Source: Scyliorhinus canicula (taxonomy: Eukaryota). From it: 64,000 nucleotides of DNA. Each line of letters begins with the position of its first letter. Within the stretch, counting starts at the first letter, position 1. Location of the stretch: NCBI RefSeq assembly GCF_902713615.1, contig NC_052164.1:40225091-40289090 (forward strand), given 5' to 3'. A model generated the notes under the pieces. That model was not told the DNA's origin. It did no database searches and saw nothing but the letters and a program-made list of their open reading frames with translations. This document shows positions 6,604 to 59,549 of the stretch, piece by piece. The position numbers were made by a program, and so were the translations under genes.

Positions 6604-6735
6604 ATGGCTCTGGCGAGTATTTGGAGGTTTGGGACGGTGTTGCTCCTCTTGTCCGGGACCCTCAGTCTGGGCTGAGTGAGGCTGCAGTTACAGCAAGTTC
6701 TCAACACAGAGACACTCAGCAAACTGAATGAAATG
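6604..6735 (+). pseudogene. Orphan IFN exon 1 (unit 1) with premature stop
   Basis: ATGGCTCTGGCG... 132 nt to ATG|GTGAG. The mature Cys1 codon TGT is TGA (6673-6675). No exon 2 seen before the B1 gene. Confidence 0.85.
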
Positions 6736-9630: not shown

Positions 9631-11162
9631 AGACGCGCAGGAGAGTTTAGGCGGCTGCTCCTGCTGCAAGAGGTTGCATTTTCACTCCCGGTGATTCTTT
9701 CGGTGAAAATACATTTGTTCGGAGAGGAACCCGGTTACGGTCAGTGTGTGATCCTCAGCTCCGTGCCTCACTCTGGCTCGGTTGCTCATGGCTCTGGCCA
9801 GTATTTGGAGGTTTGGGACGGTGCTGTTCCTCTTGTCCGGTACCCTCCCGGGACCCTCAGTCTGGGCTGTGAGAGGCTGCAGTTACAGCAAGTTCTCAAC
9901 ACAGAGACACTCAGCAAACTGAATGAAATGGTGAGTTGAAGCTGGAGCCAGAAACAATTCCCCATCGCACTGGGTCCATTTGTTTTGAAACAGTCTCTCA
10001 GGAAAATGGTTTTGGGGTTTGCAGCGCTGCACAGTTTATGGTCAGCGAATCTGCAGCATTACTGTTTCTGATCTGGGTTGACACAGTGTTTGTCTTTGCT
10101 CTCAGGGCGGTCGCTTCCCTCGGCAATGTGTCAGGGAGAGGTTTGCGCTGACAACCAAGCCCTTGAATCTGGTGAAACTGTCTGAGGGTTTGCAGGTGAG
10201 TGAACACTGGGGCTTATTATCATTTATTCCATCAGAAATGTGCGAAAAACACGATAAAGATCAACCACCGTAATCCAGGATGGACAGAGCAGGTCGCTCA
10301 TTGAAGTTGTCAGTGGAAATGAGGGAGCTCCTGCTTTGAACTCAAACCCCCGGGTAAAGACTCTCTTCCTCGTTCCCTCAGACTGATGTAGGGAATGGAA
10401 CCTCATTGAGCTGTGATACACCCTGTTCGGGGAGCCTGCCAAGTCTGCAGCACCATTCAAAGGTTACTTGTGCCTGCTAATCATCTCAATTCCTTTCATC
10501 ACCTCACTACCCATTAGCATCTCTGTCTTCTCCCTCTTACTCCCTCACTGTCTATCCACTTCTTACCATCAATCGTCCTATACAGTTCAGGCAGGGCCCT
10601 TTCATCTGTGGATTCCACACAACATACCTGTCCACTCTCCATTGCATTCATTCGATGGTCACTGTGTTGATATTGGTGGGATGGTCTTTGGCTAGTCCAG
10701 GATGCTGCCACCAGCGCTGGTCCAATTCCTGTCTGACTGAGGAGGTGTGAGACCTGCCTCTGCGCCCTTCCCTGAGAGTCGAAGACAATGACAGACTCCC
10801 TCTACAAATAAACAAAAACAAACTGCCTAGAAAGCAACTCAGGGTGAAGCATCAGATGCCACAGCGTCAGAGGCCCAGGGTGACCGTGAGGAGTTTTCAC
10901 GTTCGCTGCGTGTGCGTGGGATTCCTCCGGGTGCTCTGGTTTCCTCTCACAGTCCAAAGATGTGCAGATGAGGTGGATTGGCCATGATAAATTGTCCGTT
11001 AGTGCCCAAAGGTTTGGTGGGGTTATGGGGATGTGGCAGCGGAGTGGAAGGGGAGCTCCATTATTCTAATACTGTCCAGGGTGGCCTCTCAATTTATGTC
11101 CTCTATAAACTGGAACAGAATCCAATAACTACTGTAATATAACATAACTCAATTATCTCTGG

Positions 11163-29897: not shown

Positions 29898-30029
29898 ATG
29901 GCTCTGGCGAGTATTTGGAGGTTTGGGACGGTGTTGCTCCTCTTGTCCGCGACCCTCAGTCTGGGCTGTGAGAGGCTGCAGTTACAGCAAGTTCTCAACA
30001 CAGAGACACTCAGCAAACTGAATGAAATG
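29898..30029 (+). other. Orphan IFN exon 1 (unit 2), open frame and intact donor; candidate alternative first exon of B2
   Basis: MALASIWRFGTVLLLLSATLSLGCERLQLQQVLNTETLSKLNEM|GTGAGT. No exons 2-4 of its own seen. Confidence 0.8.
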
Positions 30030-31024
30030 GTGAGTTGAACCTACAGCCAGAGCCGGAGTCGAATCAAACAGCGTCTGTATGTTTACAAAGTCATATCAGG
30101 AGAGGAAGAGAAATGTGTGAAAAAACACATCAGGTCTGAGCGGTGAATAGAAGCTGGACACTGAGGCGAGGAGGATTTACAGAAAGGAGGGATTGTTATC
30201 TGGGGGCGGGGGTGAAAGAGGATTCAGAAACAAGCCATTCACATCAAGAATCTGTGTTTAATGTAACCAAACAATCACAGTGTTATCAGGAACACAGTAA
30301 AGTAAATTTGACATCAAGTTACGTAAGAAGGTAAAAGAACAGATGGCTAAAAGCTGGTAAAAGAGGGAACTTTTCAGGAAGGTCTTGCCGTAGGAAGGGG
30401 AGGTGGAGAAATGCGGAAGTTTACGGAGGGAATTCCTAATTTTAACGCTGAGATAGCTGAAGACTGCGCCTCAAAAATGAACATTGGAATCCAGGAGGCC
30501 AGATCTGGAGGTGGACAGATATGTCAGAGTGTTTTCGAGACTGGAGATGATTACACACACAACAGAAGACTTAAAAACAAGTAGGAGAATTTAAAGATGA
30601 AGGCATTGCTTAACTCGGCGTCATAAATCAGCAAATTCAGGTACGATGAGAGAACAAGATTCATGATTTATGCCAAAATCCATCTCAGACATAAATTACT
30701 ACAGGTTTTGATTGGGGAGAATGTGGAAAGTCGATCAGGCAGGTGTAGGAGTGACCAAACGCGGAGGTAACAAAGCTATGGATGGAAATTTCAGCTTCAG
30801 AGTTGCTCAGCCAGAGAGGGGGACAAGTGTGATTGGGGGGGGGGGGGGGGGGGGGGGTGGGCAGTCTTACTTGTGGCGTCGATGTGGTCAGAAACTAATT
30901 TCAGGGTCAAATATCACACCTGCACATCTTGGGACTGTGATGTGGAGATTTCGGCGTTGGACTGGGGTGAGCACAGTAAGAAGTCTTACAACACCAGGTT
31001 AAAGTCCAACAGGTTTGTTTCAAA

Positions 31025-31059
31025 CACGAGCTTTCGGAGCGCAGCTCCTTCTTCAGGTG
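31025..31059 (-). ncRNA. Minimal type I hammerhead ribozyme motif, Penelope-associated (copies 54490-54524 and, with a stem II mismatch, 7673-7707)
   Basis: Minus strand: CAC-CUGAAGA-A-GGAGC(UGC)GCUCC-GAA-AGCU-C^GUG. Conserved core, stem II hairpin, palindromic AGCU stem III, stem I CAC:GUG. Confidence 0.6.
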
Positions 31060-33005
31060 ACCTGGTGTTGTAAGACGTCTTACTGTGCATCGTGGGACTG
31101 TGAGAGGAAACCGGAGCACCGGGAGGAAACCCAAGCAGACACGGGGAGAACGTGCAGACTCCGCACAATCACCAGAGGCTGGAATTGAACCTGGGTGTGA
31201 GGCAGCAGTGTTAATTACTGTGCCAGGTGCTGCCTCTATGATCTGCTGGTAACTTTAACCTCACTTTTCCTCTCTGTCCAAAGTAGCACAGTGGTGCAAA
31301 GGTCAGCACTGCTGCCTCAGGGCACCGAGGACCCGGGTTCGATACCGGCTCTGGGTCACTGTCTGTGTGGAGTTTGCATATTCTCCCCGTGTCTGCATGG
31401 GTCTCATCTCCACAACCAAAAGATGTGCTGGTTAGTTGGATTGGTCACACTAAATTGCCCCTTAATTGAAAAAAAGTAATTGGTACTCTATAGTTCTAAA
31501 AAAAACTTTTCCTGTCTGTCCCTCTCCCCCGGGACACACTTTTAGATTCCCCTTGAATATCTGCAATGACCGAGGGGATTGCTTTACTGAGGAAGCGAAT
31601 TCTAAAGATTAATGAGCCACTGAGACAAACAAATTCCTCCTTACTTCCATCATAAATGGGGAGTCTTTATTTTTAAACTGTGCACCTTAGTTCTAGAATC
31701 CTCTGGAAGAGGATGCCCTCCTGTCAGCTTGTATCCAGCCAACCCCCCTCAGATTCTGAGACGTTTCAATATTCGAATTAGTTTGATCAGCACACCGGTG
31801 TTTTGAGATGATGTCATTGAGAGGTAGCATGCAGCTGAGAAATGGGAGAGGTCAAGGATTGATTCTTAGGGGACACCAGAGGTAATGCAGCCGTCCTTCA
31901 GCAGGAAGAGAAGCCACTGCAGGAAATTCTCTGCCTACGTTGAGATAGATGATAAAAGCAAACGAGGACAGCCCCCTTCCAGCCCCATCCACCCAGCCTA
32001 AAACTTGACCATTGTGCAGAGGCCTGACCGACCCGTGTCAAGGTGCAGACATGATATGGAGATGCTGGCGTTGGACTGGGCTGAGCACAGTGAAAAGTCT
32101 CAACTGAGGAAGGAGCAGTGCTCCGAAAACTAGTGTTTGAAGCAAACATGTTGGACTTATCCTGGTGTTGTAAGACTTCTTAAGGTGCAGACATATAGAG
32201 AAGGATCTGAAGGGGAGGTTAACCTTTGTTACAGCCAAACCGTTCTAACCAACTGCCCCCTTATTGTGCCCTTGATGTGAATCCGTTCAACTTGAAGGAA
32301 ATCATCTGCTTTTCCAAAATTGATATTAATAATATTGATCCATATTCTTGGAGCTTTGAGTTAGAACCGGCCGCTGTTTGTGTTTTTCTATTTGGGCTCT
32401 TCCCGGCCCTGGTTGAGGAATTTCCAGCTTTCAGATTCCTTCCCTCACACTGGGAGCAGACTAACTATTCGCCTTGTAAAAGAAACAACCGAAAGCAGAT
32501 TTCACTTTCCCAACGTAACACCGCTGATCGCCAGACCCTCCTCTTAACACGGAGAGGATGCTAGAGAGAGATCCTCCCAACACAGNNNNNNNNNNNNNNN
32601 NNNNNNNNNNNNNNNNNNNNNNNNNNNNNNNNNNNNNNNNNNNNNNNNNNNNNNNNNNNNNNNNNNNNNNNNNNNNNNNNNNNNNNNNNNNNNNNNNNNN
32701 NNNNNNNNNNNNNNNNNNNNNNNNNNNNNNNNNNNNNNNNNNNNNNNNNNNNNNNNNNNNNNNNNNNNNNNNNNNNNNNNNNNNNNNNNNNNNNNNNNNN
32801 NNNNNNNNNNNNNNNNNNNNNNNNNNNNNNNNNNNNNNNNNNNNNNNGACTCGCAGGAGAGTTTAGGCGGTTACTCCTGCTGCAAGCGGTTGCATTTTCA
32901 CTCCCGGTGATTCTTTCGGTGAAAATACAACATTTGTCGGAGTTGAACCCGGTTACGGTCAGTGTGTGATCCTCAGCTCCGTGTCTCACTCTGGCTCGGT
33001 TGCTC

Positions 33006-36000
33006 ATGCTCTGGCCAGTATTTGGAGCTTTGTGACGGTGTTGTTCCTCTTGTCCGGGACCCTCAGTCTGGGCTGTGAGAGGCTGCAGTTACAGCAAGTT
33101 CTCAACACAGAGACACTCAGCAAACTGAATGAAATGGTGAGTTGAAGCTGGAGCCAGAAACAATTCCCCATCGGCACTGGGTCCATTTGTTTTGAAGCAT
33201 TCTCTCAGGAAATGGTTCTGGGGTTTGCAGCGCTGCACAGTTTATGGTCAGCGAATCTGCAGCATTACTGTTTCTGATCTGGGTTGACACAGTGTTTGTC
33301 TTGCTCTCAGGCGGGTCGCTTCCCTCGGCAATGTGTCAGGGAGAGGTTTGCGCTGACAACCAAGACCTTGAATCTGGTGAAACTGTCTGAGGGTTTGCAG
33401 GTGAGTGAACACTGGGCTTATTATCATTTATTCCATCAGAAATGTGCGAAAAACACGATAAAGATCAACCACCGTAATCCAGGATGGGACAGAGCAGGTC
33501 GTTCATTGAAGTTGTCAGTGGAAATGAGGAGCTCCTGCTTTGAACCTCAAACCCCCGGGTAAAGACTCTCTTCCTCGTTCCCTCAGACTGATGTAGGGAA
33601 TGGAACCTCATTGAGCTGTGATGCACCCTGTTGGGGAGCCTGCCAAGTCTGCAGCATCATTCAAAGGTTACTTGTGCCTGCTAATCATCTCAATTCCTTC
33701 ATCACCTCACTACCCATTAGCATCTCTGTCTTCTCCCTCTTACTCCCTCACTGTCTATCCACTTCTTACCATCAATCGTCCTATACAGTTCAGGCAGGGC
33801 CCTTTCATCTGTGGATTCCACACACATACCTGTCCACTCTCCATTGCATTCACTCGATGGTCACTGTGTTGATATTGGTGGGCTGGTTAGCTCATTGGCT
33901 AGTCCAGGATGCTGCCACCAGCGCTGGTCCAATTCCTGTCTGACTGAGGAGGTGTGAGACCTGCCTCTGCGCCCTTCCCTGAGAGTCGAAGGACAATGAC
34001 AGACTCCCTCTACAAATAAACAAAAACCAAACTGCCCAGAAAGCAACTCAGGTGAAGCATCAGATTGCCACAGCGGCAGAGGCCCAGGGTGACCGTGTGG
34101 AGTTTTCACGTTCGCTCCGTGTGCGTGGGATTCCTCCGGGTGCCCTGGTTTCCTCTCACAGTCCAAAGATGTGCAGGTGAGGTGGATTGGCCATGATAAA
34201 TTGTCCCTTAGTGCCCAAAGGTTTGGTGGGGTTAGGGGGATGTGGCAGCGGAGTGGAAGGGGAGCTCCATTATTCTAATACTTTCCAGGTGTTCTCATCA
34301 ATTTATGTCCTCTATAAACTGGAACAGAATCCAATAACTACTGTAATATAACATAACTCAATTATCTCTGGTGCAGGCACGGTGGCACAGTGGTTAGCAT
34401 TGCTGCCTCAGTGGTGCCGATGGTCCCAACCTTGATCCCGGCTCTGGGTCATTGTCAGTGTGGAGTTTGCGCATTCTTTCCATGTTTGCGTGGATTTCGC
34501 TCCCACAATCCAAAGATGTGCACGGCAGGTGATTTGCCGTGCTAAATTGCCACTTAATTCGAAAAAATGAATTGAGTACTCTAAATTTATTTTTTTAAAC
34601 TCATCATCTCTAAATATTCCAACAACACAAACTCCCAGTCAGCCATCACCTCTGCATTCTCAGATTAGATTCATTCAGATATCACCAAGTTCACAATTTT
34701 GCAAAATGGATTTTTCCGATATTCCCCGAGGTGCCACCAAAATCTCGAATGGAGAGAGTTATTTCACTCACAGGGTCCGAGGAAGGAGATATTGATGGAT
34801 GGGTCTTGTCAGGAGATTGGTGTCAGTGGAGGGGGTTAAGTCGATGTGCGAGGAGGAGATGGGGCCCATATTGAATGACGAGGTGTGAGGCACTTCGCAG
34901 GGTGAACTCCACATCCACCTGGGCCAGGTTTGGTTTCATCCAGCCTCGGGTAGTTTTGAGGGCCACTTGACCAATTTCAGAATGAGTCACTTCTTTTTAG
35001 GGGGGGGGGGGACGACAGGTTTACAGTGCTGTTTACAGGGTCCGGGTAACAGACGTGCATATGTTCTGGTTTTGTCCCGAGGTCATGGGTTTTGGGGTCT
35101 CCTTCTTTAGCACCATGTTGGCGATCCTGAAGATTGAGCTGGAGCCCTAACCTTAGCGGCCATACTTTGGGTGTCAGACTTATCAGAGCTGCAAACGGGC
35201 GCAGGGGCCAATGGCGTCGCCTTCTCCTTCCTCATTGCTCGGAAGTGAGTTCTGCTGGGATGGAGTTCTCCGCCTCCATCCAGTGCCTCGGTTTGGCTTG
35301 GGGACCTGATTGAGTTCCTATTCCTTGAAAAAGTCAAAGAAAAGTTGAGGGGAGCAACGACGGGATTCTATGGGAGATGAAGCCTTTTACTGTATTTTTC
35401 AAGGAAATTGTCACCTTTTGTTACTCGGGGTGGGGGGGGGGGGGAGTTGACGGGAGGGGAGTGGCAGGTTTCATGAGAGGTTGTTTTATGATTCTGTTTT
35501 CATATCTGTAGATGTGTTGATTTTTCTTGTTATTTTGAATTTCATAAATGAAATATATTAATGAAATATTTATTAAAAAAAACAAAAATGCATCATCTTA
35601 ATCTGATTGTGTATATATTCCCCAGACACAGGACAGGATCCAGATTGTCCATCAGACCCTGCGTCACATCAGCAAGATCTACAGCATGAACTGGGTTCAG
35701 TCACCTGGGACCGGAACAAGGTGGAAAACCCTCCGCCTTCTCCTAGACCGACAGCTCAGTGAGCTGGAAGAATGTGCCAGGAAACAGGGCTCAGAGGCCA
35801 GACTGAGGAAAAACTCCACCATTCAAAAATACTTCAGGAAACTGAGGAAGTTTCTCAAACAGAAGGTGGGACAATTGATAATGACTCTGTGATTAGTTGG
35901 ATTGTAGTTTATTTGACCGTAATTAGATCTGTTCATTTTCCATTGGGTTTTCCTTAAAATATATTCTGTTTTTCCAGACATTCAGCAACTGTGCTTGGGA

Positions 36001-36076
36001 AATAATCCGCGCTGAGACCAGGGCCCGTTTACAACAGCTCCTTTACTTAATGGCACAAGTCCGCAGAAGAAATTGA
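33006..36076 (+). CDS. Type I interferon B2; frameshifts probably assembly errors (otherwise a pseudogene)
   Basis: Exons 33006-33136 (131 nt, ATGCT instead of ATGGCT), 33311-33400, 35626-35865 (compensating -1/+1 indels), 35978-36076. Otherwise matches B3 and lies in an indel-dense stretch. Confidence 0.7.
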
Positions 36077-42000: not shown

Positions 42001-44840
42001 GGGGTTGATTTGGGGAATGGCTGTGTTAGTCAAGGGGAAAATGGACAAATGACAACCTGTTTGTAATTTGGTTGTATCTTCGGCTGACTCTGTGATTTGT
42101 TGATGGTAGAAATAAAATATATATATTTTAAAATACTCACTAACACTTCTTCAACAGCAGCAGCCAAACCCACCACCTCTGTGACTAGTGTGGCATGGTG
42201 GCACAATGGTTAGCACTGCTGCCTAATAGCTTCCAGGGTCCAGGTTCAATTCCAGCCCGGATGACTGTCTATGTGGATTTTCTACTTTCTCCCTGTGTCT
42301 GTGTGGGTTTCCTCTGCGTGCTAGGGTTTCCTCCCACAGTCCAAAGATGTGTGGGTTAGGTGGATTGGACCTGCTAAGTTGCCCCGAGTGTCTAAAGGTT
42401 AGGTGGGGTTCCTGGGTTACGAGGATGGGGTGGAGTCATTGGCTTAATTAGGGTGCTCTTTCCAAGGGCCGGTACAGACTCAGTGGGCCAAATGGCTTCC
42501 TTCTGCACTGTAAATTCTATGATTTTATTGTTCTCGAAGATTGAAGGGTAGTAGTATATGTGAACCTGAACTTGCCCTTCAATCTCACATTCAGACTTGG
42601 AAATATATCAACTTCCCCTGACTGTCACTGGATAGAATTCTGGAAATCCCTTCCCAACACGTCTGTCAGTTTAGCGAGACCACATGGACTGCAGGGGTTC
42701 AAGAAAGTGGCTCAGACCTGCTTCTGAAGGGCAATTAGAGGGGAGAAACATACCTTGGCCTTGCCAGCAATGTTCCCATATCAGCTACAATGTTCTCGAA
42801 TGGTGGGGTAGAATTGCGAGGCCGAGTGGCTGATCATGCTCCTGATTTATTTGTTGTGGTGTTTGTCTGTTCATGATCACAATGCTGGTTGTTGGTGAGT
42901 GAAGCTCAATTGGCTAACATGTTACCTACATTACTACAGTGACAATACCTCAAAGGTACTTGATCAGCTGTCAACTACTTTGTGATATTCTGTGGTCAAG
43001 AAGGTCGCTACATGAATGTAAGTCTGTTTTCAAATCAAAGACATATTGAAAACAGGGCTCCACACACAAAACTGACCTCAGCTCAGGATCAATGGATCAT
43101 CACTGACATTTTTTACAGGCCTTTCAGGAGGCTTCAAAAACTACATTTGGACAATTTGGGTGTGGGGACAGTAATACTTTCACAATTAACTTTTTAATTT
43201 GGAAACATAAAGAATATTAAACCCCAGTGTCACCAGAGATTGAGCCAGTATATTTTCAGTGATGTTCAATTGGGTTTCTAACAGAGGATAAATCGATACT
43301 GTAAACATGCTTAAATATATGCATCTAATATTTTGAGATCTTTTCAAAAATTCAATTTTACTAATTCAGTCTGATTGTGCTGGTTCATGGCAGATGTGAC
43401 GTTTGGTGATTGGCAATGAATTGCAGTGGCAAATCTTTCAGACGGTTGGTGCAGACTTCGATGGGCCGAATGGCTGCCTTCTGCACTCTCAGGATTCTAT
43501 GATGTGGAGATGCCTGGCGTTGGACTGGGTGGGCACAGTAAGAAGTCCAACAAGTTTGTTTCAAATCACTAGCTTTCATACCTCTTAATTCACGGATGAA
43601 GGAGCAGTGCTCCGAAAGCTAGTGTTTGAAACAAACATGTTGGACTTTAACCTGGTGTTTTAAGACTTCTTACTGTGCTCACCGCAGTCCAACGCACGGC
43701 ATCTCACATCATGACTAGCTTTTGGTGCATTCCTCCTTCCTCAGGTGAATGGAGAGGTAGGTTCCAGAAACATTTATACAGACAAAGTCAAAGATGCAAG
43801 ATGATACTTTGAATGCGGGTAAATAAGTCTTCACAGAGCCAGAGAGAGGGTAACCCCAGGTAAAAGAGGTGTGAATTGTCTCAAGCCAGGACAGTTGGTA
43901 GGATTTCGCAAGCCCAGGCCAGATGGTGGTGGTGGGGGGGGGGGGGGGTTGAATGTAATGCGACATGAATCCCAGGTCCCGGAACTTGGCTATATGTTTC
44001 TGCTCTGCAATTCCGCGTTGTTGCGCGTCCTGTGAATTAGAGATGAGAAACCTTGGCCTTGCCCGCGACCCTCACATCCCATCAATGAATTAAAAAAGTC
44101 AATTTTGCAGAGAAATGTGTGAATGAGCATGCGATTTTTATTTGGTGAAGGTGGAAAAGCTGATTTCAATCCGAGTTCCAGCTGAGAGGGATTGGGTGAC
44201 ATTCCCTGTGGAAGCTGGGATATCCCGAATATCCGGACCCTTTCCCATTTCCCCCTCAGGCCTCTCAGTGGCGAGCGGCTCGCTTCACAAACTCTCCTCC
44301 CTCTCGGAAATGACAAAACGCCTTCTCTTTCCCTGAGGCACTTTCGCTTTTGGAACAAACTGACAACAAGGTTCATTTCCAGAGAGAAAGTGAGGCAGCC
44401 GCTTTCCCGGGAGACAGAGAGAGAGACAAGAAAGAAACGGGGTGAAAGGAGAGGGAGCGGAATCACTTTCACCCTCGGAATCGGAGCAGATGAAATATTC
44501 TTTCAGTCAAACTCTTGAAAACGGCTCCAGAAAGCAGCGGGAAATGAGCAAGTTGTGCCAGTGAAAGAGCAGATTGTGGGACAGCTCAATGGGAGCGGAG
44601 TCAGTGTCCATGAAGCGGGGAGCCTGGGCTCTGAGCCGGGCTCTCTGCAATGTTCAAGCTGTGAAGGGTGGAGAGAACAAGCGCGATGTGAACACACCGG
44701 GTCCCGGTGCATTTCAGAGGCAATGGGGCCCCGGGTCAGCTCGAGAAGCCGCCGCACCGGATTCCCGCTCTCGGTGTCGCTGTAATCCGGATGATCAAAT
44801 CCAGCCCCCAATACATGTTCCCCCTGCACCCCCCCCCAGC

Positions 44841-45236
44841 AATACTGAGCCTCCCTCTACACCACCAAACTGCCCCCCCCCCAAAAACTGACCCTCCCTC
44901 TGCACCTCCTTACTGCCCCCCAATACTGAGCCACCCTCTACACCACCATACTGCCCCCCGAATACTCTGCCCCCCTCTACACCAAATTACTGCCCCCACA
45001 ATACTGAGTCCTACTCTGCACCACCGTACTGCCCCCCCCCCAATACTGAGCCTCCCTCTACACCACCCTACTGCCGCCCCCAAATACAGAGTCCCCCTCT
45101 ACACCACCTTACTGCCCCACAATACTGAGCCTCCCTCTACACCACCTTACTGCCGCCCCCCAATACTGAGCCTCCCTCTACACCACCTTACTGCCCCCAA
45201 TATTGACCCTCCCTCTAATCCACCATACTGCCCCCC
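44841..45236. repeat. Same minisatellite, 10 copies
   Basis: Same variant order as 21377-21772. Confidence 0.92.
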
Positions 45237-45658
45237 GGGTGATGAGAAGCTTCACAACACTGAGCTGGAAGCCAGCGCTGCTTGGGATTTTCTCGCAGGG
45301 ATTCCCCACTCACTGCTTCCGGAGTCTCCAGCTTTCAGCTTCCTGACCTCAAAGAGAACCGCACAAACTATTGATCTCCTGCAGCTCGAACACAAATCCT
45401 CCAGCCCATTTTCACTTTACCAATGTCATGTCCACACCTTAAAGGCGACAGCATGTCAGAGCCAGTGCCAGCTCCCAACAGAGTCCACACTCACACTCAC
45501 TCCATTCGCTAACAGAGGCGTTCGCTCCCGGATCAGAATCGGCTCCCATTCGACTTTCCCACTTTCATTCGCTTCACAAGAACCTTTCTCGCCGCTGAAC
45601 CACGAAGCCGCCGCTTACTCATCTTTTACATCGGTGTGTGACTCTGGCTCGGTTGCTC

Positions 45659-47793
45659 ATGGCTCTGGCGAGTATTTGGAGGATTGGGGCGGTGTTGTTC
45701 CTCTTGTCCGGGACCCTCAGTCTGGGCTGTGAGAGGCTGCAGTTACAGCAAGTTCTTAACACAGAGACACTCAGCAAACTGAATGAAATGGTGAGTTGAA
45801 GCTGGTTTCTGAGCAGCCTGTGAATCACATTGGGTCTAATTGCTGTGAAATGTTATTTCTGGAGAAATAGTTTGGGGTTTTAATGAGATTTTAATTTACT
45901 CCTCTCAGGGTGGTTCCTTTCCCAGACACTGTATAAAACACAGGCACGCGCTGAAAACCAAGCCCTTGAACCTGGTGAAACTTTCGAAGGGATTAGAGGT
46001 GAGTGTGACAATGGTAGCAGCTTCTGTCGTTACATTTCACTCTGTAGTTAGAGCAACAACCTGATCGGAACCGGGAACATCAGGAATTTTCAATTGAGAG
46101 ATTTGCACCCATTGTGATAATGATAGCAGCTTCTGTCGTTATATTTCATTCTGTATCTCACCCATGAACTGTGTCACTCTCTCTTCCCGCATTCACTATC
46201 TCACTATCTCTAACCCCAGAAAATATGCCCCTGTCTCTCATCAACTCTTCATTGCAAATTACTTTCTTGTTGCAACTATCGGATTGCTTGAACTATCTTA
46301 ATCTCCCAATGTCACTGTTTCTGAGCCTGTCATTCCTCTGATCAACAATTTCCTCCCGCAAAATATAATTATACTTAAAATCTGTGGACATATTTTCCAG
46401 AGTATTTCCACTTCAGATTGACATTAAGTGCAATCTTACGTGTACAATGCAATTATAATATTCCTAATGTTAACGGAGCACATCTCGTGTCAGATATATA
46501 GCTTCAGTGCAAAACCATTCATGATTATTGCTGATAGATAAGATAGACCAAGGAAAAACTTCCCATTAGTTCATGGTACAAGGTCCAGGAGACACATATT
46601 TAATATCCACTTAAGGACATCATCCCCAAAGCCACTTTTACCAAACCAGTTGGAGTCAGGGAATTCAGAAATTGGACATCCACAAAACAATCTTGTCAGG
46701 TTTGTTTCCTGGTTGTTATTATTCGCGCGCGATCTCTGACGTTTCTTGCGGTCTTGGGCCGAGCAGTTGCCATACCAGGCTGTGATGCAGCCAGATATGA
46801 TGCTTTCTATGGTGCACCTGTAAAAGTTGGTAAGTCATTGTGGACATTCCGAATTTAGGTTCCTGAGGAAGTATAGGCTTCGGTGGGTGGGTTAAAGTGG
46901 GTGGACCTGGACAGATTTTTGGTGATGTGCACACCTAGGAATTTGAAGCTGTCAACCATCTCCACCTCAGCTCCGTTGATGCAAACAGGGGTCTGTATAA
47001 GACTTTGCTTCCTAAAGTCAATGACCGGCTCTTTTATTTTGCTGGCATTGCGGCAGAGATTGTTGTTGTTACAGCACTCCACTGGATTTTCTATCTCCCT
47101 TCTGTATTCTGACTCACTGTTGTTCCAGATCCGACCCACTGTAGTCGTGTCGTCAGCAACACTGTAGATGGCGGTGGAGCCGCATTTTGCCACAATCCTA
47201 TGTGTATAGGGAATATAGTAGGGGGCAAAGTACGGAGTATTGCGTATTTGAGCATTTTAAGTTTGATTTATTTTTGTTCTTCGAAATAATTTATTCGAAT
47301 TCTAAAGGTAACAGGTCTCTCTAATATCGTTTTGTATTCTGTACAGAAAGAGGATCAGATCCAGATTCTCCATCAGACCCTGCGTCACATCAGCAAGATC
47401 TACAGCATGAACCTGGGCTCAGTCACCTGGGACCGGGACACGGTGGAAAACCTCCGCCTTCTCCTGGACCGACAGCTCAGTGAGCTGGAAGAATGTGTCA
47501 GGAATCAGGGATCAGAGCACAAGATGAGGAGAAACTCCACCATTCATAATTACTTTAGGAAACTGGAGAAGTTTCTCAATCAGGAGGTGGGACAATTGAC
47601 AATTGACTGTGTGATTACTGGCTGGTCGATCATTTCACCCGATCAACATTAATTTATTTTCTAATACACTTTCCTGAATAATTTTCTTTTTCAGAAATTC
47701 AGTGACTGTGCCTGGGAAATAATCCGCACTGACACCAGGGCCCGATTACAACAGATGCTTTTCATAATGCTGCAAATCAGCAGAAGAAACTGA
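45659..47793 (+). CDS. Type I interferon A3, intact 4-exon gene, apparently identical protein to A2
   Basis: Exons 45659-45790, 45909-45998, 47347-47586, 47695-47793. Offset 23463 nt from the A2 ATG. Confidence 0.92.
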
Positions 47794-50272: not shown

Positions 50273-52520
50273 AGAATAAGAAAGCGAAAGATGAAGGCAT
50301 TAATTCAGAAGGGACAGGGAGAAATGGGATTGAGTTTGGAGATGTTGCAGTGTTGAGGTGACAATTTTGCGATCTAATGATGCAGAAGTTCAGGCTTATG
50401 CTCAGAGGATGTTGGTGAAAATTACACACTTTGATGGGATTTGAATTTAGTTAATCAATCGCAGTAATAGTAAGCACGATATTGTACAAAACACTTTCCT
50501 GATGCACTCATGTCTGTTCGGGAAGGAAATTGATGCCCCATCCCCGCTCTGGCCTACATGTGGCTACAACAATGTTATTGCCTCTTCACAGCCCTCTGAT
50601 GTGGCCTAGGAGCCATGAACCTCAAGGGCAATTAGGCATGGGCAACAAATGCTGGCCTGACTGGTGATATGGAATTGATACGATAGAATTTTGAATACTG
50701 ACTGTATGACATCAGAACACAAGGAGGAGCAGACCAATTCTGTTCCACCATTCAATTTTGTCTTAAGTGATCTGATTGTGGCCTTATCCCATTTCCTACT
50801 TACCCCCATCACTTTTACTCATTTGTTGATCAGACAACTGTCCAAATCGGGCTTGGATGTATTCAATGATCCTGGCTCTGTGCAGGTTGCAGAATGTGAA
50901 AGATTAATGGCACTTGGAGCAATCAGAGTTTACAATCAGATCGGAGAGGATGTTATCGAATGGTGGGATAGGATGGTGAGGACGAGTGGCCTATGATGCT
51001 CCTAATTTATATGTTGGGGTGTTTTTCTGTTCATGATCACAACACTGGTTGTTGATAGGTGAAGCACAAATTGGCAAACGTGTTTCATATATTACGACAG
51101 TCACAATGCCTCAAATGTACTACATCAGCAGTCGTGTACTTTGTGATGTTCTGTTGTCAGGAAGGGCGCTACATAAATGTAATTCTGTTTTCAAATCAAA
51201 CACATATTGAAAACTGTCCCCACACAAAAAACCCACCTCAGCTCAGGATCAATGGATCATCGCTGAAATTGTTTACAGGCCTTCGATAGGCTCCAAAAAC
51301 TAGTTTTGACAATTTGGGTCTGAGGACAGATTTAGTTTCTGAAATTAACTTTTGAATTTGAAAACAGAAAGACAATTACACCCCAGTGTCACCAGACATT
51401 GAGCCTGTATTATTTTCAGTAATGTTGAATCAGGTTTCCAACAGAGGTAAAATCGATACTGGCATTAAAGTGCTTCTGCGTTTAAATAAAATTGCGCGTG
51501 GCAACAACCTTAAATACATGCATCAATATTCTCAGATATTTTCAAAAATTCAATGTTAATATGCAGTCTGATTTTGCTGGTTCATGGCAGATGTGGCGTT
51601 TGGTGATTGGCAATTATTTGGAGTGGAAAATCTTTCAGAGGGTCGGTGCAGATTGGATGGGCTGAATGGCTGCCTTCTGCACTGTAGGGATTGTATGATT
51701 TTATGAATTAGAGATGAGAAGCACACAGTGACCTTGCCAGCGAACCTCACATCCCATCAATGAGTAAAATAAGTCAAATTTGGCACAGATTTCAGTGAGT
51801 GGACCTGAGATTTTTATTTGGTAACGGTGGACATGGTGATTTCTATCCGAGTTCCAGCTGTGAGGGATTGGGTGACATTCCCTGTGGAAGCTGGGATATC
51901 CCGAATATCCGGAACCCTTTCCCATTTCCCCCTCAGGCCTTTCAGTGACGAGCCGCTCGCTTCACAAACTCTCCTCCCTCTCGGAAATGACAAAACGCCC
52001 TCACTTTCCCTGAGGCACTTTCGCTTTTGGAACAAACTGACAACAAGGTTCATTTCCAGAGAGAAACTGAGGCGGCCGCTTTCCCGGGAGAGAGAGAGAG
52101 AGAGAGAAGAAAGAAACGGGGTGAAAGGAGAGGGAAAGGAATCACTTTCACCCTCGGAATCGGAGCAGATGAAATATTCTTTCAGTCAAACTATTGAAAA
52201 CGGCTCCAGAAAAGCAGCGGGAAATGAGCAAGTTGTGCCAGTGAAAGAGCAGATTGTGGGACAGCTCAATGGGAGCGGAGTCAGTGTCCATGAAGCGGGG
52301 AGCCTGGGCTCTGAGCCGGGCTCTCTGCAATGTTCAAGCTGTGAAGTGTGGAGAGGACAAGCGCGATGTGAACACACCGGGTCCCGGTGCATTTCAGAGG
52401 CAATGGGGCCCCGGGTCAGCTCGGAAAGCCGCCGCACCGGATTCCCGCTCTCGGTGTCTCTATAATCCGGATGATCAAATCCAGACCCCAATACATGTTC
52501 CCCCTGCAAACCCACCCCCC

Positions 52521-52951
52521 AATACTGAGCCTCCCTCTACACCACCTTATTGCCCCCCCCCAATAATAAGCCTCCCTCTACACCACCTAACTGCCCCCCC
52601 AACACTGAGCCTCCCTCTACACCACCTTATTGCCCCCCCCCCAATACTAAGCCTCCCTCTACACCACCTAACTGCCCTCCCAACACTGAGCCTCCCTCTA
52701 CACCCCCTTACTGCCCCCCAATACAGAGCCTCCCTCTACACCACCTTACTGCCCCCAATACTGAGCCTACCTCTACACCACCTTACTGCCCCCCCCCACC
52801 AATACTGAGCCTCCCTCTACACCTTACTGCCCCCCCCCAATACTGAGCCTCCCCCTTCACCACCTTTCTGCCGCAAATACTGAGCCTCCCTCTACACCCC
52901 CTTACTGCCCCCCCAATACAGAGCCTCCCTCTCCACCACCTTACTGCCCCC
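52521..52951. repeat. Same minisatellite, 11 copies
   Basis: Same variant order as 29055-29485. Confidence 0.92.
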
Positions 52952-53363
52952 GGGTGATGTGAAGCTTCACAACACTGAGCTGGAAGCCAGCGCTGTTTAG
53001 TATTTTCTCGCAGGGATTTCCCTCTCGCTGCTTCCGGAGTCTCCAGTTTTCAGCTTCCTGACCTCAGAGAGAAACCGCACAAACTATTGATCTCCTGCAG
53101 CTCGAGCACAAATCCTCCAGCCCATTTTCACTTTTCCAATGTCATGTCCACACGTTAAAGGCGACACCAGTGCCAGCTCCCAGCAGAGTCCACACTCACA
53201 CTCACTCCATTCGGCAACACAGGCGCTCGCTCCCGGATCACAAGCGGTTCCCATTCGACTTTCCCACTTTCATTCGCTTCACAAGAACCCTTCTCGCCGC
53301 TGAACCACGAAGCCGCCGCTTTCTCATCTTTCACATCGGTGTGTGACTCTGGCTCGGTTGCTC

Positions 53364-53495
53364 ATGGCTCTGGCGAGTATTTGGAGGTTTGGGACGGTGT
53401 TGCTCCTCTTGTCCGCGACCCTCAGTCTGGGCTGTGAGAGGCTGCAGTTACAGCAAGTTCTCAACACAGAGACACTCAGCAAACTGAATGAAATG
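53364..53495 (+). other. Orphan IFN exon 1 (unit 3), open frame and intact donor; candidate alternative first exon of B3
   Basis: Same sequence as 29898-30029. Phase-0 donor compatible with the B3 exon 2 acceptor at 56780. Confidence 0.8.
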
Positions 53496-56472
53496 GTGAG
53501 TTGAACCTACAGCCAGAGCCGGAGTCGAATCAAACAGCGTCTGTATGTTTTACAAAGTCATATCAGGAGAGGAAGAGAAATGTGTGAAAAAACACATCAG
53601 GTCTGAGCGGTGAATAGAAGCTGGACACTGAGGCGAGGAGGATTTACAGAAAGGAGGGATTGTTATCTGGGGGCGGGGGTGAAAGAGGATTCAGAAACAA
53701 GCCATTCACATCAAGAATCTGTGTTTAATGTAACCAAACAATCACAGTGTTATCAGGAACACAGTAAAGTAAATTTGACATCAAGTTACGTAAGAAGGTA
53801 AAAGAACAGATGGCTAAAAGCTGGTAAAAGAGGGAACTTTTCAGGAAGGTCTTGCCGTAGGAAGGGGAGGTGGAGAAATGCGGAAGTTTACGGAGGGAAT
53901 TCCTAATTTTAACGCTGAGATAGCTGAAGACTGCGCCTCAAAAATGAACATTGGAATCCAGGAGGCCAGATCTGGAGGTGGACAGATATGTCAGAGTGTT
54001 TTCGAGACTGGAGATGATTACACACACAACAGAAGACTTAAAAACAAGTAGGAGAATTTAAAGATGAAGGCATTGCTTAACTCGGCGTCATAAATCAGCA
54101 AATTCAGGTACGATGAGAGAACAAGATTCATGATTTATGCCAAATCCATCTCAGACATAAATTACTACAGGTTTTGATTGGGGAGAATGTGGAAAGTCGA
54201 TCAGGCAGGTGTAGGAGTGACCAAACGCGGAGGTAACAAAGCTATGGATGGAAATTTCAGCTTCAGAGTTGCTCAGCCAGAGAGGGGGACAAGTGTGATT
54301 GGGGGGGGGGGGGGGGGGGGAGTGGGCAGTCTTACTTGTGGCGTCGATGTGGTCAGAAACTAATTTCAGGGTCAAATATCACACCTGCACATCTTGGGAC
54401 TGTGATGTGGAGATTTCGGCGTTGGACTGGGGTGAGCACAGTAAGAAGTCTTACAACACCAGGTTAAAGTCCAACAGGTTTGTTTCAAACACGAGCTTTC
54501 GGAGCGCAGCTCCTTCTTCAGGTGACCTGGTGTTGTAAGACGTCTTACTGTGCATCTTGGGACTGTGAGAGGAAACCGGAGCACCGGGAGGAAACCCAAG
54601 CAGACACGGGGAGAACGTGCAGACTCCGCACAATCACCAGAGGCTGGAATTGAACCTGGGTGTGAGGCAGCAGTGTTAATTACTGTGCCAGGTGCTGCCT
54701 CTATGATCTGCTGGTAACTTTCACCTCACTTTTCCTCTCTGTCCAAAGTAGCACAGTGGTGCAAAGGTCAGCACTGCTGCCTCAGGGCACCGAGGACCCG
54801 GGTTCGATACCGGCTCTGGGTCACTGTCTGTGTGGAGTTTGCATATTCTCCCCGTGTCTGCATGGGTCTCATCTCCACAACCAAAAGATGTGCTGGTTAG
54901 TTGGATTGGTCACACTAAATTGCCCCTTAATTGAAAAAAAGTAATTGGTACTCTATAGTTCTAAAAAAAACTTTTCCTGTCTGTCCCTCTCCCCCGGGAC
55001 ACACTTTTAGATTCCCCTTGAATATCTGCAATGACCGAGGGGATTGCTTTACTGAGGAAGCGAATTCTAAAGATTAATGAGCCACTGAGACAAACAAATT
55101 CCTCCTTACTTCCATCATAAATGGGGAGTCTTTATTTTTAAACTGTGCACCTTAGTTCTAGAATCCTCTGGAAGAGGATGCCCTCCTGTCAGCTTGTATC
55201 CAGCCAACCCCCCTCAGATTCTGAGACGTTTCAATATTCGAATTAGTTTGATCAGCACACCGGTGTTTTGAGATGATGTCATTGAGAGGTAGCATGCAGC
55301 TGAGAAATGGGAGAGGTCAAGGATTGATTCTTAGGGGACACCAGAGGTAATGCAGCCGTCCTTCAGCAGGAAGAGAAGCCACTGCAGGAAATTCTCTGCC
55401 TACGTTGAGATAGATGATAAAAGCAAACGAGGACAGCCCCCTTCCAGCCCCATCCACCCAGCCTAAAACTTGACCATTGTGCAGAGGCCTGACCGACCCG
55501 TGTCAAGGTGCAGACATGATATGGAGATGCTGGCGTTGGACTGGGCTGAGCACAGTGAAAAGTCTCAACTGAGGAAGGAGCAGTGCTCCGAAAACTAGTG
55601 TTTGAAGCAAACATGTTGGACTTTATCCTGGTGTTGTAAGACTTCTTAAGGTGCAGACATATAGAGAAGGATCTGAAGGGGAGGTTAACCTTTGTTACAG
55701 CCAAACCGTTCTAACCAACTGCCCCCTTATTGTGCCCTTGATGTGAATCCGTTCAACTTGAAGGAAATCATCTGCTTTTCCAAAATTGATATTAATAATA
55801 TTGATCCATATTCTTGGAGCTTTGAGTTAGAACCGGCCGCTGTTTGTGTTTTTCTATTTGGGCTCTTCCCGGCCCTGGTTGAGGAATTTCCAGCTTTCAG
55901 ATTCCTTCCCTCACACTGGGAGCAGACTAACTATTCGCCTTGTAAAAGAAACAACCGAAAGCAGATTTCACTTTCCCAACGTAACACCGCTGATCGCCAG
56001 ACCCTCCTCTTAACACGGAGAGGATGCTAGAGAGAGATCCTCCCAACACAGNNNNNNNNNNNNNNNNNNNNNNNNNNNNNNNNNNNNNNNNNNNNNNNNN
56101 NNNNNNNNNNNNNNNNNNNNNNNNNNNNNNNNNNNNNNNNNNNNNNNNNNNNNNNNNNNNNNNNNNNNNNNNNNNNNNNNNNNNNNNNNNNNNNNNNNNN
56201 NNNNNNNNNNNNNNNNNNNNNNNNNNNNNNNNNNNNNNNNNNNNNNNNNNNNNNNNNNNNNNNNNNNNNNNNNNNNNNNNNNNNNNNNNNNNNNNNNNNN
56301 NNNNNNNNNNNNNGACTCGCAGGAGAGTTTAGGCGGTTACTCCTGCTGCAAGCGGTTGCATTTTCACTCCCGGTGATTCTTTCGGTGAAAATACAACATT
56401 TGTTCGGAGTTGAACCCGGTTACGGTCAGTGTGTGATCCTCAGCTCCGTGTCTCACTCTGGCTCGGTTGCTC

Positions 56473-59400
56473 ATGGCTCTGGCCAGTATTTGGAGCTTTG
56501 TGACGGTGTTGTTCCTCTTGTCCGGGACCCTCAGTCTGGGCTGTGAGAGGCTGCAGTTACAGCAAGTTCTCAACACAGAGACACTCAGCAAACTGAATGA
56601 AATGGTGAGTTGAAGCTGGAGCCAGAAACAATTCCCCATCGCACTGGGTCCATTTGTTTTGAAGCATTCTCTCAGGAAAATGGTTCTGGGGTTTGCAGCG
56701 CTGCACAGTTTATGGTCAGCGAATCTGCAGCATTACTGTTTCTGATCTGGGTTGACACAGTGTTTGTCTTTGCTCTCAGGGCGGTCGCTTCCCTCGGCAA
56801 TGTGTCAGGGAGAGGTTTGCGCTGACAACCAAGACCTTGAATCTGGTGAAACTGTCTGAGGGTTTGCAGGTGAGTGAACACTGGGGCTTATTATCATTTA
56901 TTCCATCAGAAATGTGCGAAAAACACGATAAAGATCAACCACCGTAATCCAGGATGGACAGAGCAGGTCGTTCATTGAAGTTGTCAGTGGAAATGAGGGA
57001 GCTCCTGCTTTGAACTCAAACCCCCGGGTAAAGACTCTCTTCCTCGTTCCCTCAGACTGATGTAGGGAATGGAACCTCATTGAGCTGTGATGCACCCTGT
57101 TGGGGGAGCCTGCCAAGTCTGCAGCATCATTCAAAGGTTACTTGTGCCTGCTAATCATCTCAATTCCTTTCATCACCTCACTACCCATTAGCATCTCTGT
57201 CTTCTCCCTCTTACTCCCTCACTGTCTATCCACTTCTTACCATCAATCGTCCTATACAGTTCAGGCAGGGCCCTTTCATCTGTGGATTCCACACAACATA
57301 CCTGTCCACTCTCCATTGCATTCACTCGATGGTCACTGTGTTGATATTGGTGGGCTGGTTAGCTCATTGGCTAGTCCAGGATGCTGCCACCAGCGCTGGT
57401 CCAATTCCTGTCTGACTGAGGAGGTGTGAGACCTGCCTCTGCGCCCTTCCCTGAGAGTCGAAGACAATGACAGACTCCCTCTACAAATAAACAAAAACAA
57501 ACTGCCCAGAAAGCAACTCAGGGTGAAGCATCAGATGCCACAGCGGCAGAGGCCCAGGGTGACCGTGTGGAGTTTTCACGTTCGCTCCGTGTGCGTGGGA
57601 TTCCTCCGGGTGCCCTGGTTTCCTCTCACAGTCCAAAGATGTGCAGGTGAGGTGGATTGGCCATGATAAATTGTCCCTTAGTGCCCAAAGGTTTGGTGGG
57701 GTTAGGGGGATGTGGCAGCGGAGTGGAAGGGGAGCTCCATTATTCTAATACTGTCCAGGGTGTTCTCTCAATTTATGTCCTCTATAAACTGGAACAGAAT
57801 CCAATAACTACTGTAATATAACATAACTCAATTATCTCTGGTGCAGCACGGTGGCACAGTGGTTAGCATTGCTGCCTCAGGGTGCCGAGGTCCCAACCTT
57901 GATCCCGGCTCTGGGTCATTGTCAGTGTGGAGTTTGCGCATTCTTTCCATGTTTGCGTGGATTTCGCTCCCACAATCCAAAGATGTGCACGGCAGGTGAT
58001 TTGCCGTGCTAAATTGCCACTTAATTCGAAAAAATGAATTGAGTACTCTAAATTTATTTTTTTTAAACTCATCATCTCTAAATATTCCAACAACACAAAC
58101 TCCCAGTCAGCCATCACCTCTGCATTCTCAGATTAGATTCATTCAGATATCACCAAGTTCACAATTTTGCAAAATGGATTTTTCCGATATTCCCCGAGGT
58201 GCCACCAAAATCTCGAATGGAGAGAGTTATTTCACTCACAGGGTCCGAGGAAGGAGATATTGATGGATGGGTCTTGTCAGGAGATTTGGTGTCAGTGGAG
58301 GGGGTTAAGTCGATGTGCGAGGAGGAGATGGGGCCCATATTGAATGACGAGGTGTGAGGCACTTCGCAGGGTGAACTCCACATCCACCTGGGCCAGGTTT
58401 GGTTTCATCCAGCCTCGGGTAGTTTTGAGGGCACACTTGACCAATTTCAGAATGAGTCACTTCTTTTTAAGGGGGGGGGGGGACGACAGGTTTACAGTGC
58501 TGTTTACATGGTCCGGGTAACAACGTGCATATGTTCTGGTTTTGTCCCGAGGTCATGGGTTTTGGGGTCTCCTTCTTTAGCACCATGTTGGCGATCCTGA
58601 AGATTGAGCTGGAGCCCTAACCTTTAGCGGCCATACTTTGGGTGTCAGACTTATCAGAGCTGCAAACGGGCGCAGGGGCCAATGGCGTCGCCTTCTCCTT
58701 CCTCATTGCTCGGAAGTGAGTTCTGCTGGGATGGAGTTCTCCGCCTCCATCCAGTGCCTCGGTTTGGCTTGGGGACCTGATTGAGTTCCTATTCCTTGAA
58801 AAAGTCAAAGAAAAGTTGAGGGGAGCAAACGACGGGATTCTATGGGAGATGAAGCCTTTTACTGTATTTTTCAAGGAAATTGTCACCTTTTGTTACTCGG
58901 GGTGGGGGGGGGGGGAGTTGACGGGAGGGGAGTGGCAGGTTTCATGAGAGGTTGTTTTATGATTCTGTTTTTCATATCTGTAGATGTGTTGATTTTTCTT
59001 GTTATTTTGAATTTCATAAATGAAATATATTAATGAAAATATTTATTAAAAAAACAAAAATGCATCATCTTTAATCTGATTGTGTATATATTCCCCAGAC
59101 ACAGGACAGGATCCAGATTGTCCATCAGACCCTGCGTCACATCAGCAAGATCTACAGCATGAACCTGGGTTCAGTCACCTGGGACCGGAACAAGGTGGAA
59201 AACCTCCGCCTTCTCCTAGACCGACAGCTCAGTGAGCTGGAAGAATGTGCCAGGAAACAGGGCTCAGAGGCCAGACTGAGGAAAAACTCCACCATTCAAA
59301 AATACTTCAGGAAACTGAGGAAGTTTCTCAAACAGAAGGTGGGACAATTGATAATTGACTCTGTGATTATTGGATTGTAGTTTATTTGACCGTAATTAGA

Positions 59401-59549
59401 TCTGTTCATTTTCCAATTGGGTTTCCTTAAAATATATTCTGTTTTTCCAGACATTCAGCAACTGTGCTTGGGAAATAATCCGCGCTGAGACCAGGGCCCG
59501 TTTACAACAGCTCCTTTACTTAATGGCACAAGTCCGCAGAAGAAATTGA
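56473..59549 (+). CDS. Type I interferon B3, intact 4-exon gene, 186 aa
   Basis: Exons 56473-56604, 56780-56869, 59099-59338, 59451-59549. MALASIWSFVTVLFLLSGTLSLG/CERLQ...GGRFPRQC...LEECARKQ...TFSNCAWEIIRAETRARLQQLLYLMAQVRRRN*. Confidence 0.93.

Follow-up and report, generated by a model that had tools for sequence, protein, structure and literature searches.

In the type I interferon cluster of the catshark Scyliorhinus canicula, a solitary A-type promoter and first exon lies approximately 3.1 kb 5′ of the complete B gene in each tandem repeat unit. With a probability of roughly 0.55, this distal module provides the B gene with an alternative promoter and leader exon. We infer that transcription would start approximately 130–180 nt upstream of position 53364, and that splicing would link the cap-proximal GTGAGT donor at 53496 with the acceptor of B exon 2 (56780). 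Such an mRNA would encode the same mature IFN-B with a signal peptide differing at four residues.

The cluster was analyzed in a single stretch of 64,000 nt (hereafter, the window), which holds approximately 2.7 tandem units of 23.4 kb each. Coordinates refer to the plus strand of the window, assembly gaps being unstranded. The 3′ end of exon 1 followed by GTGAGT was found in eight copies, with none expected by chance, and three exon 1 copies were assigned to each 23.4-kb unit by using self-BLAST: a distal or “orphan” copy (starting at 6604, 29898, and 53364), a B copy (9788, 33006, and 56473), and an A copy (22196 and 45659). The second exon 1 that the first-pass annotation had placed about 3.1 kb upstream of B exon 1 was present in all three units. 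Four proteins were scored against the Interferon alpha/beta domain PF00143 (P0025, 90.6 bits; P0027, 93.7 bits; P0036, 103.6 bits; P0012, 102.4 bits), and all were above the curated cut-off of 26.8 bits. The B gene consists of four coding exons of 132, 90, 240, and 99 nt separated by three phase-0 introns, one intron fewer than the four phase-0 introns of intron-containing IFN genes in teleosts and amphibians (PMC6640115).

The distal module is a partial copy of an A-type 5′ end, added later before a complete B gene and lacking the downstream exons of its parent. Its upstream segment (50950..53363) duplicates the upstream region of the A gene (42790–45658 for A2) and includes a 38–41-nt minisatellite at 52511–52950. 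Identity to the A counterpart is 83.5–89.6% over the distal parts of this segment and 93–94% over the last 400 nt 5′ of distal exon 1, in agreement with the full A-type upstream region that had been claimed. The duplicate is fairly old and extends from approximately 2.4 kb of upstream sequence through the promoter and exon 1 into the first 13–22 nt of intron 1; the B gene's own promoter and exon 1 are older and more diverged than this copy.

Within the distal promoter, a perfect palindromic NF-kB consensus (GGGATTTCCC) is located at 53013..53022 (−351), and the A genes carry GGGATTCCCC at the homologous place. An IRF half-site or PRDI-like element (TTTCACTT, −238) and then a TATA-like TTAAAG (−209) follow at 53126..53160, a region conserved in every distal and A copy. 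Each of the three distal promoter copies retains the kB, IRF-like, and TTAAAG elements. The proximal B promoter (55823..56472) is old and has diverged from the homologous A-type promoter (approximately 64–68% identity); it has a GAAAGTGAAA-type IRF element and lacks both a strict kB site and, at the homologous place, TTAAAG. It is on these motif differences that the suggestion of two regulatory programs for IFN-B is based.

Distal exon 1 of unit 3 (53364..53495) contains 44 codons in an open frame that encodes a typical signal peptide, with cleavage at SLG/C, and the first 21 mature residues, and it ends in phase 0 at a GTGAGT donor, as had been described. The donor context is identical to that of the working exons, and the translation equals residues 1–44 of RefSeq XP_038634692.1. 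The unit 2 copy (29898..30029) is identical to that of unit 3 and forms the first coding exon of the same RefSeq model. The unit 1 copy (6604..6735) is disabled by an in-frame TGA at 6673–6675 (TGTGAG to TGAGTG), so the earlier statement that the exon is complete and open holds for two of the three copies. Distal-specific letters are TCCGCGACC at 53413–53421 (75–83 nt before the donor) and GGAGGTTTGGGAC. As read from the sequence, in both versions of exon 1 the n-region is basic or polar, the core is rich in Leu, and the cleavage site reads SLG/CERLQ; four residues differ between the distal and proximal signal peptides.

The proposed long intron (53496..56779) starts with GTGAGT and measures 3,284 nt when the N run is counted as written. 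Its likeness to IFN introns stops 13–22 nt past the distal donor, and the remainder consists of unique sequence and SINE fragments (54385–54970 and 55512–55655). In order to detect remnants of exons 2–4, including a missed exon 2, positions 53496–56400 were searched with the B3 protein (tblastn, E up to 10, word size 2); none were found, the single match (53511–53570, E 8.5) being a chance one. Neither AATAAA nor ATTAAA occurs in the readable letters before B exon 2, where two weak acceptor-like sites and no strong acceptor are present. Open reading frames of at least 60 aa in this interval are short frames from alternative start codons, several of them overlapping SINE fragments, and one further frame that starts with ATG and runs into the N run.

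The first compatible acceptor is, as the first-pass annotation had it, that of B exon 2 (56780..56869, beginning GGCGGTCGC; 33311 in unit 2), which is followed by B exon 3 (59099..59338) and by B exon 4 with the stop codon (59451..59549). The splice 53495>56780 yields an open frame of 186 aa in which the altered signal peptide precedes an unchanged mature IFN-B, and the anatomy permits exactly this splice. Two promoter and first-exon modules, each in frame, stand upstream of one acceptor, which is the structure of alternative first exons.

An assembly gap of 262 letters (N run, 56052..56313) lies inside the proximal promoter, 160 nt upstream of the proximal ATG. Because this part of the promoter is non-coding and falls inside the proposed intron, the reading frame is independent of the gap. 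Both flanks align collinearly to the A-type promoter, and self-BLAST showed an N run at the homologous position of every unit. The unit 2 run (32586–32847) also has 262 letters, and since 29898–36076 with this run counted amounts to 6179 nt, the span of the RefSeq CDS, the run has the same length in the public assembly. An N run 2.6 kb downstream of the extra exon 1 in every unit, together with homopolymer indels in the unit 2 assembly, would fit a mis-join in a tandem array beside gaps. Such an artefact is nonetheless very improbable, given that the copy recurs in three units with unit-specific substitutions and that DNA contigs from another species (organism A, below) independently join a distal-type exon 1 to distal-type downstream sequence over 0.9–1.1 kb.

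Proximal exon 1 is intact in unit 3 (56473..56604), and its donor context matches that of the distal exon. An 11-nt tandem insertion shifts the frame of the B1 copy (9788..9930), and the B2 copy (33006..33136) has a 1-nt deletion directly after the ATG, in a homopolymer and possibly an assembly error. The idea that B2 is a true pseudogene was set aside, as all three of its indels are 1-nt homopolymer changes that may be assembly errors. The two leaders look redundant in S. canicula, where individual repeat units have one or the other broken.

Public gene models were then compared with this anatomy. XP_038634692.1 runs from the distal ATG at 29898 to the B2 stop at 36076 and continues with B2 exon 2 at 33311; a junction of the 53495>56780 type is already modelled by RefSeq in unit 2. 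Another S. canicula gene using the distal first exon, XP_038634701.1, spans 6725 nt. Altogether, the distal first exon is used in RefSeq models of two of seven S. canicula and three of three S. torazame B-type genes. The S. torazame models (XP_072342344–46) have a distal-type signal peptide and span 6141–6147 nt (approximately 6.14 kb); the distance from distal ATG to stop in the window is 6179–6186 nt. Gene span was rejected as proof of distal use, because introns vary in length and one A-type gene of S. torazame extends over 4174 nt. All of these distal-using models are automatic predictions named “interferon alpha-F-like”, and Gnomon models can derive from protein homology alone, would choose any intact exon 1, and are not RNA proof. 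In unit 3, the RefSeq B3 protein starts at Met44 (56602).

Exon 1 was also compared among copies. The tract from −22 to +13 is 95–100% identical among all copy types, vs 52–63% in the next 100 nt of intron, and the final 90 nt of exon 1 is near-identical in all eight copies, synonymous sites included, with one change, in the two A copies. Exon 1 and approximately 20 nt on each side therefore look as if homogenised by gene conversion among A, B, and distal copies. An intact frame thus need not mean selection, and selection on the distal module is inseparable from gene conversion. The earlier claim that a truncated paralogue has been kept as an alternative promoter accordingly stands in part: the module is a partial A-type duplicate and is used in gene models, while “kept” cannot be told apart from gene conversion and one of three copies is disabled.

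Both identity patterns would be expected of an inert relic, either the stump of a partial duplication or a third gene minus exons 2–4, amplified within the 23.4-kb unit. Its intactness would then come from gene conversion, and the distal-using models would be computational rescues of a damaged exon 1. The in-frame stop in unit 1 points the same way, as do RNA contigs that lack the distal junction and the RefSeq models, which take the distal exon for unit 2, whose proximal exon is frameshifted, and proximal exon 1 for three other genes. We consider this reading rather unlikely. The 400-nt promoter has stayed at 93–94% identity vs 83–90% for the more distal duplicated sequence, and although one of three copies carries a stop, the module is found in DNA of the sister species and is open in all three of its models.

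The sister-species DNA (X27 and X28) came as contigs of organism A, in which the translation of exon 2 exactly equals the S. torazame B protein; judging from this exact match of 30 residues, organism A is probably S. torazame. Its proximal exon 1 has a 9-nt deletion and a G>A change at the first intron base, and its distal-type exon 1 has approximately the same depth as the B gene. Contigs drop variants, and S. torazame may also hold intact proximal copies. Judging from contigs and gene models, the donor of proximal exon 1 appears to be lost in S. torazame, which would leave the distal exon as the sole usable leader, and a secreted B-type protein would then need the distal exon. These observations weigh against an inert relic. 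The arrangement of promoter and exon 1 is older than the split of S. canicula and S. torazame.

As a tentative extension of the alternative-promoter reading, the two species may show a promoter take-over midway. An A-type NF-kB/IRF module would have been grafted onto the B gene before the split; S. torazame would have replaced the IRF-rich proximal promoter, and both would still be working in S. canicula. On the same tentative footing, S. canicula would have one mature cytokine under two regulatory modules, with individual units losing either.

The distal donor is not the only one available to a distal transcript. An equally strong proximal donor, nearer the acceptor, lies inside it and could win. 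The distal promoter might accordingly be active and give other mRNA, with read-through transcripts that use the proximal donor or stay unspliced and that exert transcriptional interference or form a long leader whose 46-codon upstream frame damps IFN-B translation. The two donors are identical and share one acceptor, the proximal one being 175 nt away vs 3,284 nt for the distal one. If the proximal donor were used, the mRNA would retain a 3.3-kb leader containing 36 upstream ATGs, all of them 3′ of the distal donor and 5′ of the proximal ATG, and the readable letters contain no poly(A) signal. First-exon definition, however, normally favours the cap-proximal donor, and the apparent destruction of the proximal donor in the sister species would remove this route there. 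Read-through is therefore improbable, even though in teleosts an upstream start of IFN genes yields a long transcript that responds poorly to induction (PMC5127012).

Transcript evidence was sought in RNA contigs, sequencing runs, and protein collections. X25, the sole B-type RNA contig, begins at exon 2 and is spliced to exon 3. X26 has at least 133 nt of A/distal-type leader 5′ of the ATG and is not assignable to one copy. Neither the 53495>56780 junction nor a start at the distal promoter was seen in these two contigs, the reads having been matched to 56314–56950. Matching of runs to the 3-kb interval gave 0.02–0.05 of words, which is TE noise, and among the runs matched to B exons 3–4 a single RNA run contained a B transcript (X25). 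A search with exon 1 for transcript-derived proteins carrying the distal signal peptide returned 0 candidates, and the exon 3 protein search matched NCBI genome annotation proteins only. No paper on catshark IFN gene structure or the distal-exon arrangement was found, and the supplements of Redmond et al. 2019 contain only a partial A-type catshark sequence starting in intron 1.

Type I IFN genes with two promoters or alternative starts are known from teleosts, namely Atlantic salmon IFNa1, zebrafish ifnphi1, and rainbow trout IFN1, where one of the two starts is believed to respond more strongly to induction (PMC5127012, PMC3828176). As in the catshark, the gene contains introns, a pair of regulatory regions lies upstream of it, and its coding exons are shared by alternative 5′ ends. 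In the teleost systems, however, the IFN made from the long transcript is intracellular, since that transcript has no signal peptide, whereas each of the two catshark leaders carries a complete signal peptide ahead of an identical mature protein. The second catshark promoter and exon, 3.1 kb distant, can also be recognised as copied in part from the 5′ end of a paralogue. Finally, the teleost cases rest on cDNA, whereas the catshark case is known from genome sequence and gene models.

Partial gene duplication creating alternative first exons is a general origin of vertebrate alternative promoters. The catshark locus resembles such cases in its tandem promoter and exon 1, each exon with its own donor and a common acceptor, and in copies that can decay or specialise. 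It differs in that the source is subtype A and the recipient is gene B, so that an A-type regulatory module has been moved onto a B-type cytokine.

The regulation of interferon subtypes has been studied mostly in mammals, where the genes are intronless, and in teleosts. Public annotation of this cluster is inconsistent, with three different 5′ ends given for three near-identical B genes in the window. If the distal exon is used, sharks would have a third way of diversifying interferon control, in which promoter and leader modules are shuffled between subtypes via partial duplication and the secreted protein is left unchanged, and the two catshark species would offer a natural before-and-after pair for the contribution of each promoter.

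The window holds approximately 2.7 tandem units of 23.4 kb each, 96–99% identical to one another by self-BLAST. The 3′ end of interferon exon 1 with its GTGAGT donor occurs eight times (none expected by chance), each unit having three exon 1 copies: a distal, solitary one (ATG at 6604, 29898 and 53364), the B gene's own, or proximal, one (9788, 33006 and 56473) and that of the A gene (22196 and 45659). B3, the B gene of unit 3, consists of four exons (56473–56604, 56780–56869, 59099–59338 and 59451–59549) separated by introns that are all phase 0; it encodes 186 amino acids, and its products match Pfam PF00143 with scores far over the cut-off.

The distal exon of unit 3 (53364–53495) was found to be open, encoding a normal signal peptide and the first 21 mature residues, and it ends in a donor (AATG/GTGAGT) identical to that of the working exons. 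A tblastn search with the B3 protein under very permissive settings detected no remnant of exons 2–4 between 53496 and 56400. If 53495 is joined to 56780, the frame stays open for 186 residues and departs from B3 at four positions, all in the signal peptide. The first-pass annotation was thus right about a second exon 1 upstream of the B gene, about its having no exons 2–4 of its own, and about a possible in-frame splice to B exon 2 with an altered signal peptide. It had also placed such a copy upstream of each B gene, which holds for all units, the open frame being kept in two of the three copies and lost in unit 1. There, the distal exon contains an in-frame TGA (TGTGAG to TGAGTG) and the proximal B exon 1 an 11-nt tandem insertion; both normal first exons of this unit are broken. 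Unit 1 additionally has about 175 more letters 5′ of the B1 promoter (8851–9027) than units 2 and 3. Both exons are intact in unit 3. Unit 2 has an intact distal exon, a 1-nt deletion directly after the ATG of the proximal exon and, in exon 3, a −1 and a +1 indel separated by 38 nt; all three B2 changes (33006–33136; 35626–35865) alter the length of a homopolymer by 1 nt and are possibly assembly errors.

The distal copy is homologous to the 5′ region of the A gene from 50950 to about 53505 (42790–45800 in A2, the A gene of unit 2), with identities of 83.5–89.6% in the distal parts and 93–94% in the last 400 nt. Homology to any interferon intron ends 13–22 nt past the distal donor, beyond which lies unique sequence with SINE fragments at 54385–54970 and 55512–55655. 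Copies of a tRNA-derived SINE with a conserved core were observed at 54740–54970 and 57840–58030. The B gene's own promoter begins at 55823 and is collinear with the A-type promoter at ~64–68% identity, a divergence resembling that of the B introns. The proximal promoter together with its exon 1 therefore represents B's original 5′ end. On sequence comparison, the distal module arose later, through partial duplication of an A-type 5′ end. By motif matching, the distal promoter has a perfect kB site (GGGATTTCCC, 53013–53022), an IRF half-site (TTTCACTT) and a TATA-like TTAAAG at −209, and the proximal promoter has no strict kB site, an IRF element of the GAAAGTGAAA type with additional GAAA half-sites and no TATA-like element at the homologous place. 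A minisatellite of 38–41-nt units (containing caatactgagcctccctctacacc) lies immediately 5′ of every A-type promoter, distal copies included (e.g., 52511–52950 and 44830–45236), and its copy number varies among them.

Within the readable letters of 53496–56779, neither AATAAA nor ATTAAA is present and the two acceptor-like sites are both weak; the first good acceptor after the distal donor is that of B exon 2. An unspliced distal leader would be burdened by 36 ATGs, counted from the distal donor to the proximal ATG. A distal transcript would carry two identical donors, one cap-proximal and one adjacent to the acceptor. Use of the former would yield the proposed distal-exon mRNA, and use of the latter would retain a 3.3-kb leader. 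The acceptor-adjacent donor therefore speaks for a distal copy that is transcribed and fails to give the proposed mRNA, an outcome we consider improbable.

An N run at 56052–56313, 160 nt 5′ of the proximal ATG, falls within the proximal promoter and the proposed intron and therefore interrupts no reading frame. On its left, the flank can be aligned to the A-type promoter as far as the counterpart of 53168, and on its right from 53221 onward, making the flanks collinear with that promoter; the ~52 A-type letters between the flank ends are already accounted for by readable B letters. An insertion may be hidden in the run, or hardly any sequence at all, and an exon, acceptor or poly(A) signal may sit within it. 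All three units have N runs at this homologous point (9449–9630, 182 letters; 32586–32847, 262; 56052–56313, 262), a recurrence more suggestive of an assembly difficulty tied to the sequence itself than of random gaps.

Exon 1 with ~20 nt on either side is 95–100% identical across A, B and distal copies (e.g., 53342–53508, 45637–45803 and 56451–56617), versus 52–63% among copy types in the following 100 nt of intron; exon 2 is far more divergent than exon 1 (~65% protein identity). This pattern points to gene conversion limited to a tract of ~170 nt, which could preserve the intact look of a useless distal exon. The identity contrast speaks for a distal exon that is an inert relic, homogenized by conversion, a possible reading that we regard as less likely than its use.

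Public gene models were also compared. A protein search seeded with the exon 3 frame returned XP_038634692.1 (S. canicula, GCA_902713615.2), an exact match to the window at B2. Its 6179-nt CDS span corresponds to 29898–36076 with the 262-letter N run of unit 2 counted, its first coding exon is the distal exon 1, and it reads through the exon 3 indel pair, giving 13 scrambled residues. XP_038634701.1 (6725 nt) likewise begins in a distal exon 1, and XP_038634697.1, XP_038634699.1 and XP_038634703.1 (3073, 3080 and 3063 nt) begin in the proximal one. The B1 model, XP_038634690.1 (7494 nt), splices B1 exon 2 to another, putative upstream exon (5376–5486), which lies 1.1 kb 5′ of that unit's disabled distal exon. 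The B3 model, XP_038634694.1 (2948 nt, 56602–59549), starts at Met44 (56602), the last exon 1 codon, and so has no signal peptide, although the window frame is open from 56473. In S. torazame, XP_072342344–46 have a distal-type signal peptide and CDS spans of 6141–6147 nt, near the 6179–6186 nt from distal ATG to stop in the window; CDS span alone carries little weight, an A-type gene of S. torazame having a span of 4174 nt. These models are automatic predictions that protein homology alone may underlie.

The first-pass annotation had proposed that a truncated paralogue was kept as an alternative IFN-B promoter. The partial A-type duplicate, the in-frame splice and the gene models with the distal exon partly support this proposal, against which gene conversion could explain the intactness. 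We put the probability that B-type genes use the distal exon as a first exon at slightly better than even, roughly 0.55.

In RNA run X25 (S. canicula), a 403-nt contig joins B exons 2 and 3 by splicing and starts one letter before exon 2, so the exon 1 that was used lies outside it. At 56834, in exon 2, it has C (the TTKPLNL type, shared by B1 and several genes beyond the window) where B2 and B3 have A; as the only B-type RNA contig seen, it indicates that the copy expressed in this sample is not B3. A 151-nt contig from run X26 reads through 133 nt or more of A/distal-type leader into the ATG; it matches no window copy exactly, and its extent is compatible with transcription beginning close to the TTAAAG element. 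Short contigs are unable to link diagnostic letters to exon 2, since all copies share almost the same final 90 nt of exon 1, with a single change in the two A copies. A protein search returned no transcript-derived protein fragments.

Teleost IFNa/ifnphi1 has two promoter regions with alternative starts, the long form being without a signal peptide (PMC5127012, PMC3828176). In contrast, both catshark leaders encode signal peptides with the same mature protein, and the extra module is a recognizable copy of a paralogue's 5′ end. No paper on such an arrangement in sharks was found in the literature.

Contigs from runs X27 and X28 (organism A) continue through introns, the longest reaching 17–82 kb, and thus derive from DNA. 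With ~94% identity, a 1,058-nt contig covers the 3′ half of proximal exon 1, intron 1, exon 2 and intron 2. The five changes in its exon 2 give, on translation, exactly residues 45–74 of the S. torazame B protein, by which organism A is probably S. torazame. This contig has a 9-nt deletion (three codons) in exon 1 and a G>A change in the first base of the intron, so its proximal donor is dead; the last exon 1 base is also altered in one of the two runs. No contig 90% alike was found over 56314–56445 in either run. Both runs carry a distal-type exon 1 (G, G, G and C at four diagnostic places), and 0.9–1.1-kb contigs join exon 1 to distal-type downstream sequence at about the depth of the B intron contig. 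That the distal exon is an assembly artefact is very unlikely. Intact proximal copies may exist in the sister species, since contigs drop variants. Its presence in organism A DNA makes the distal module older than the species split, and, judging from these contigs, the sister-species B genes seem to have no other usable leader exon.
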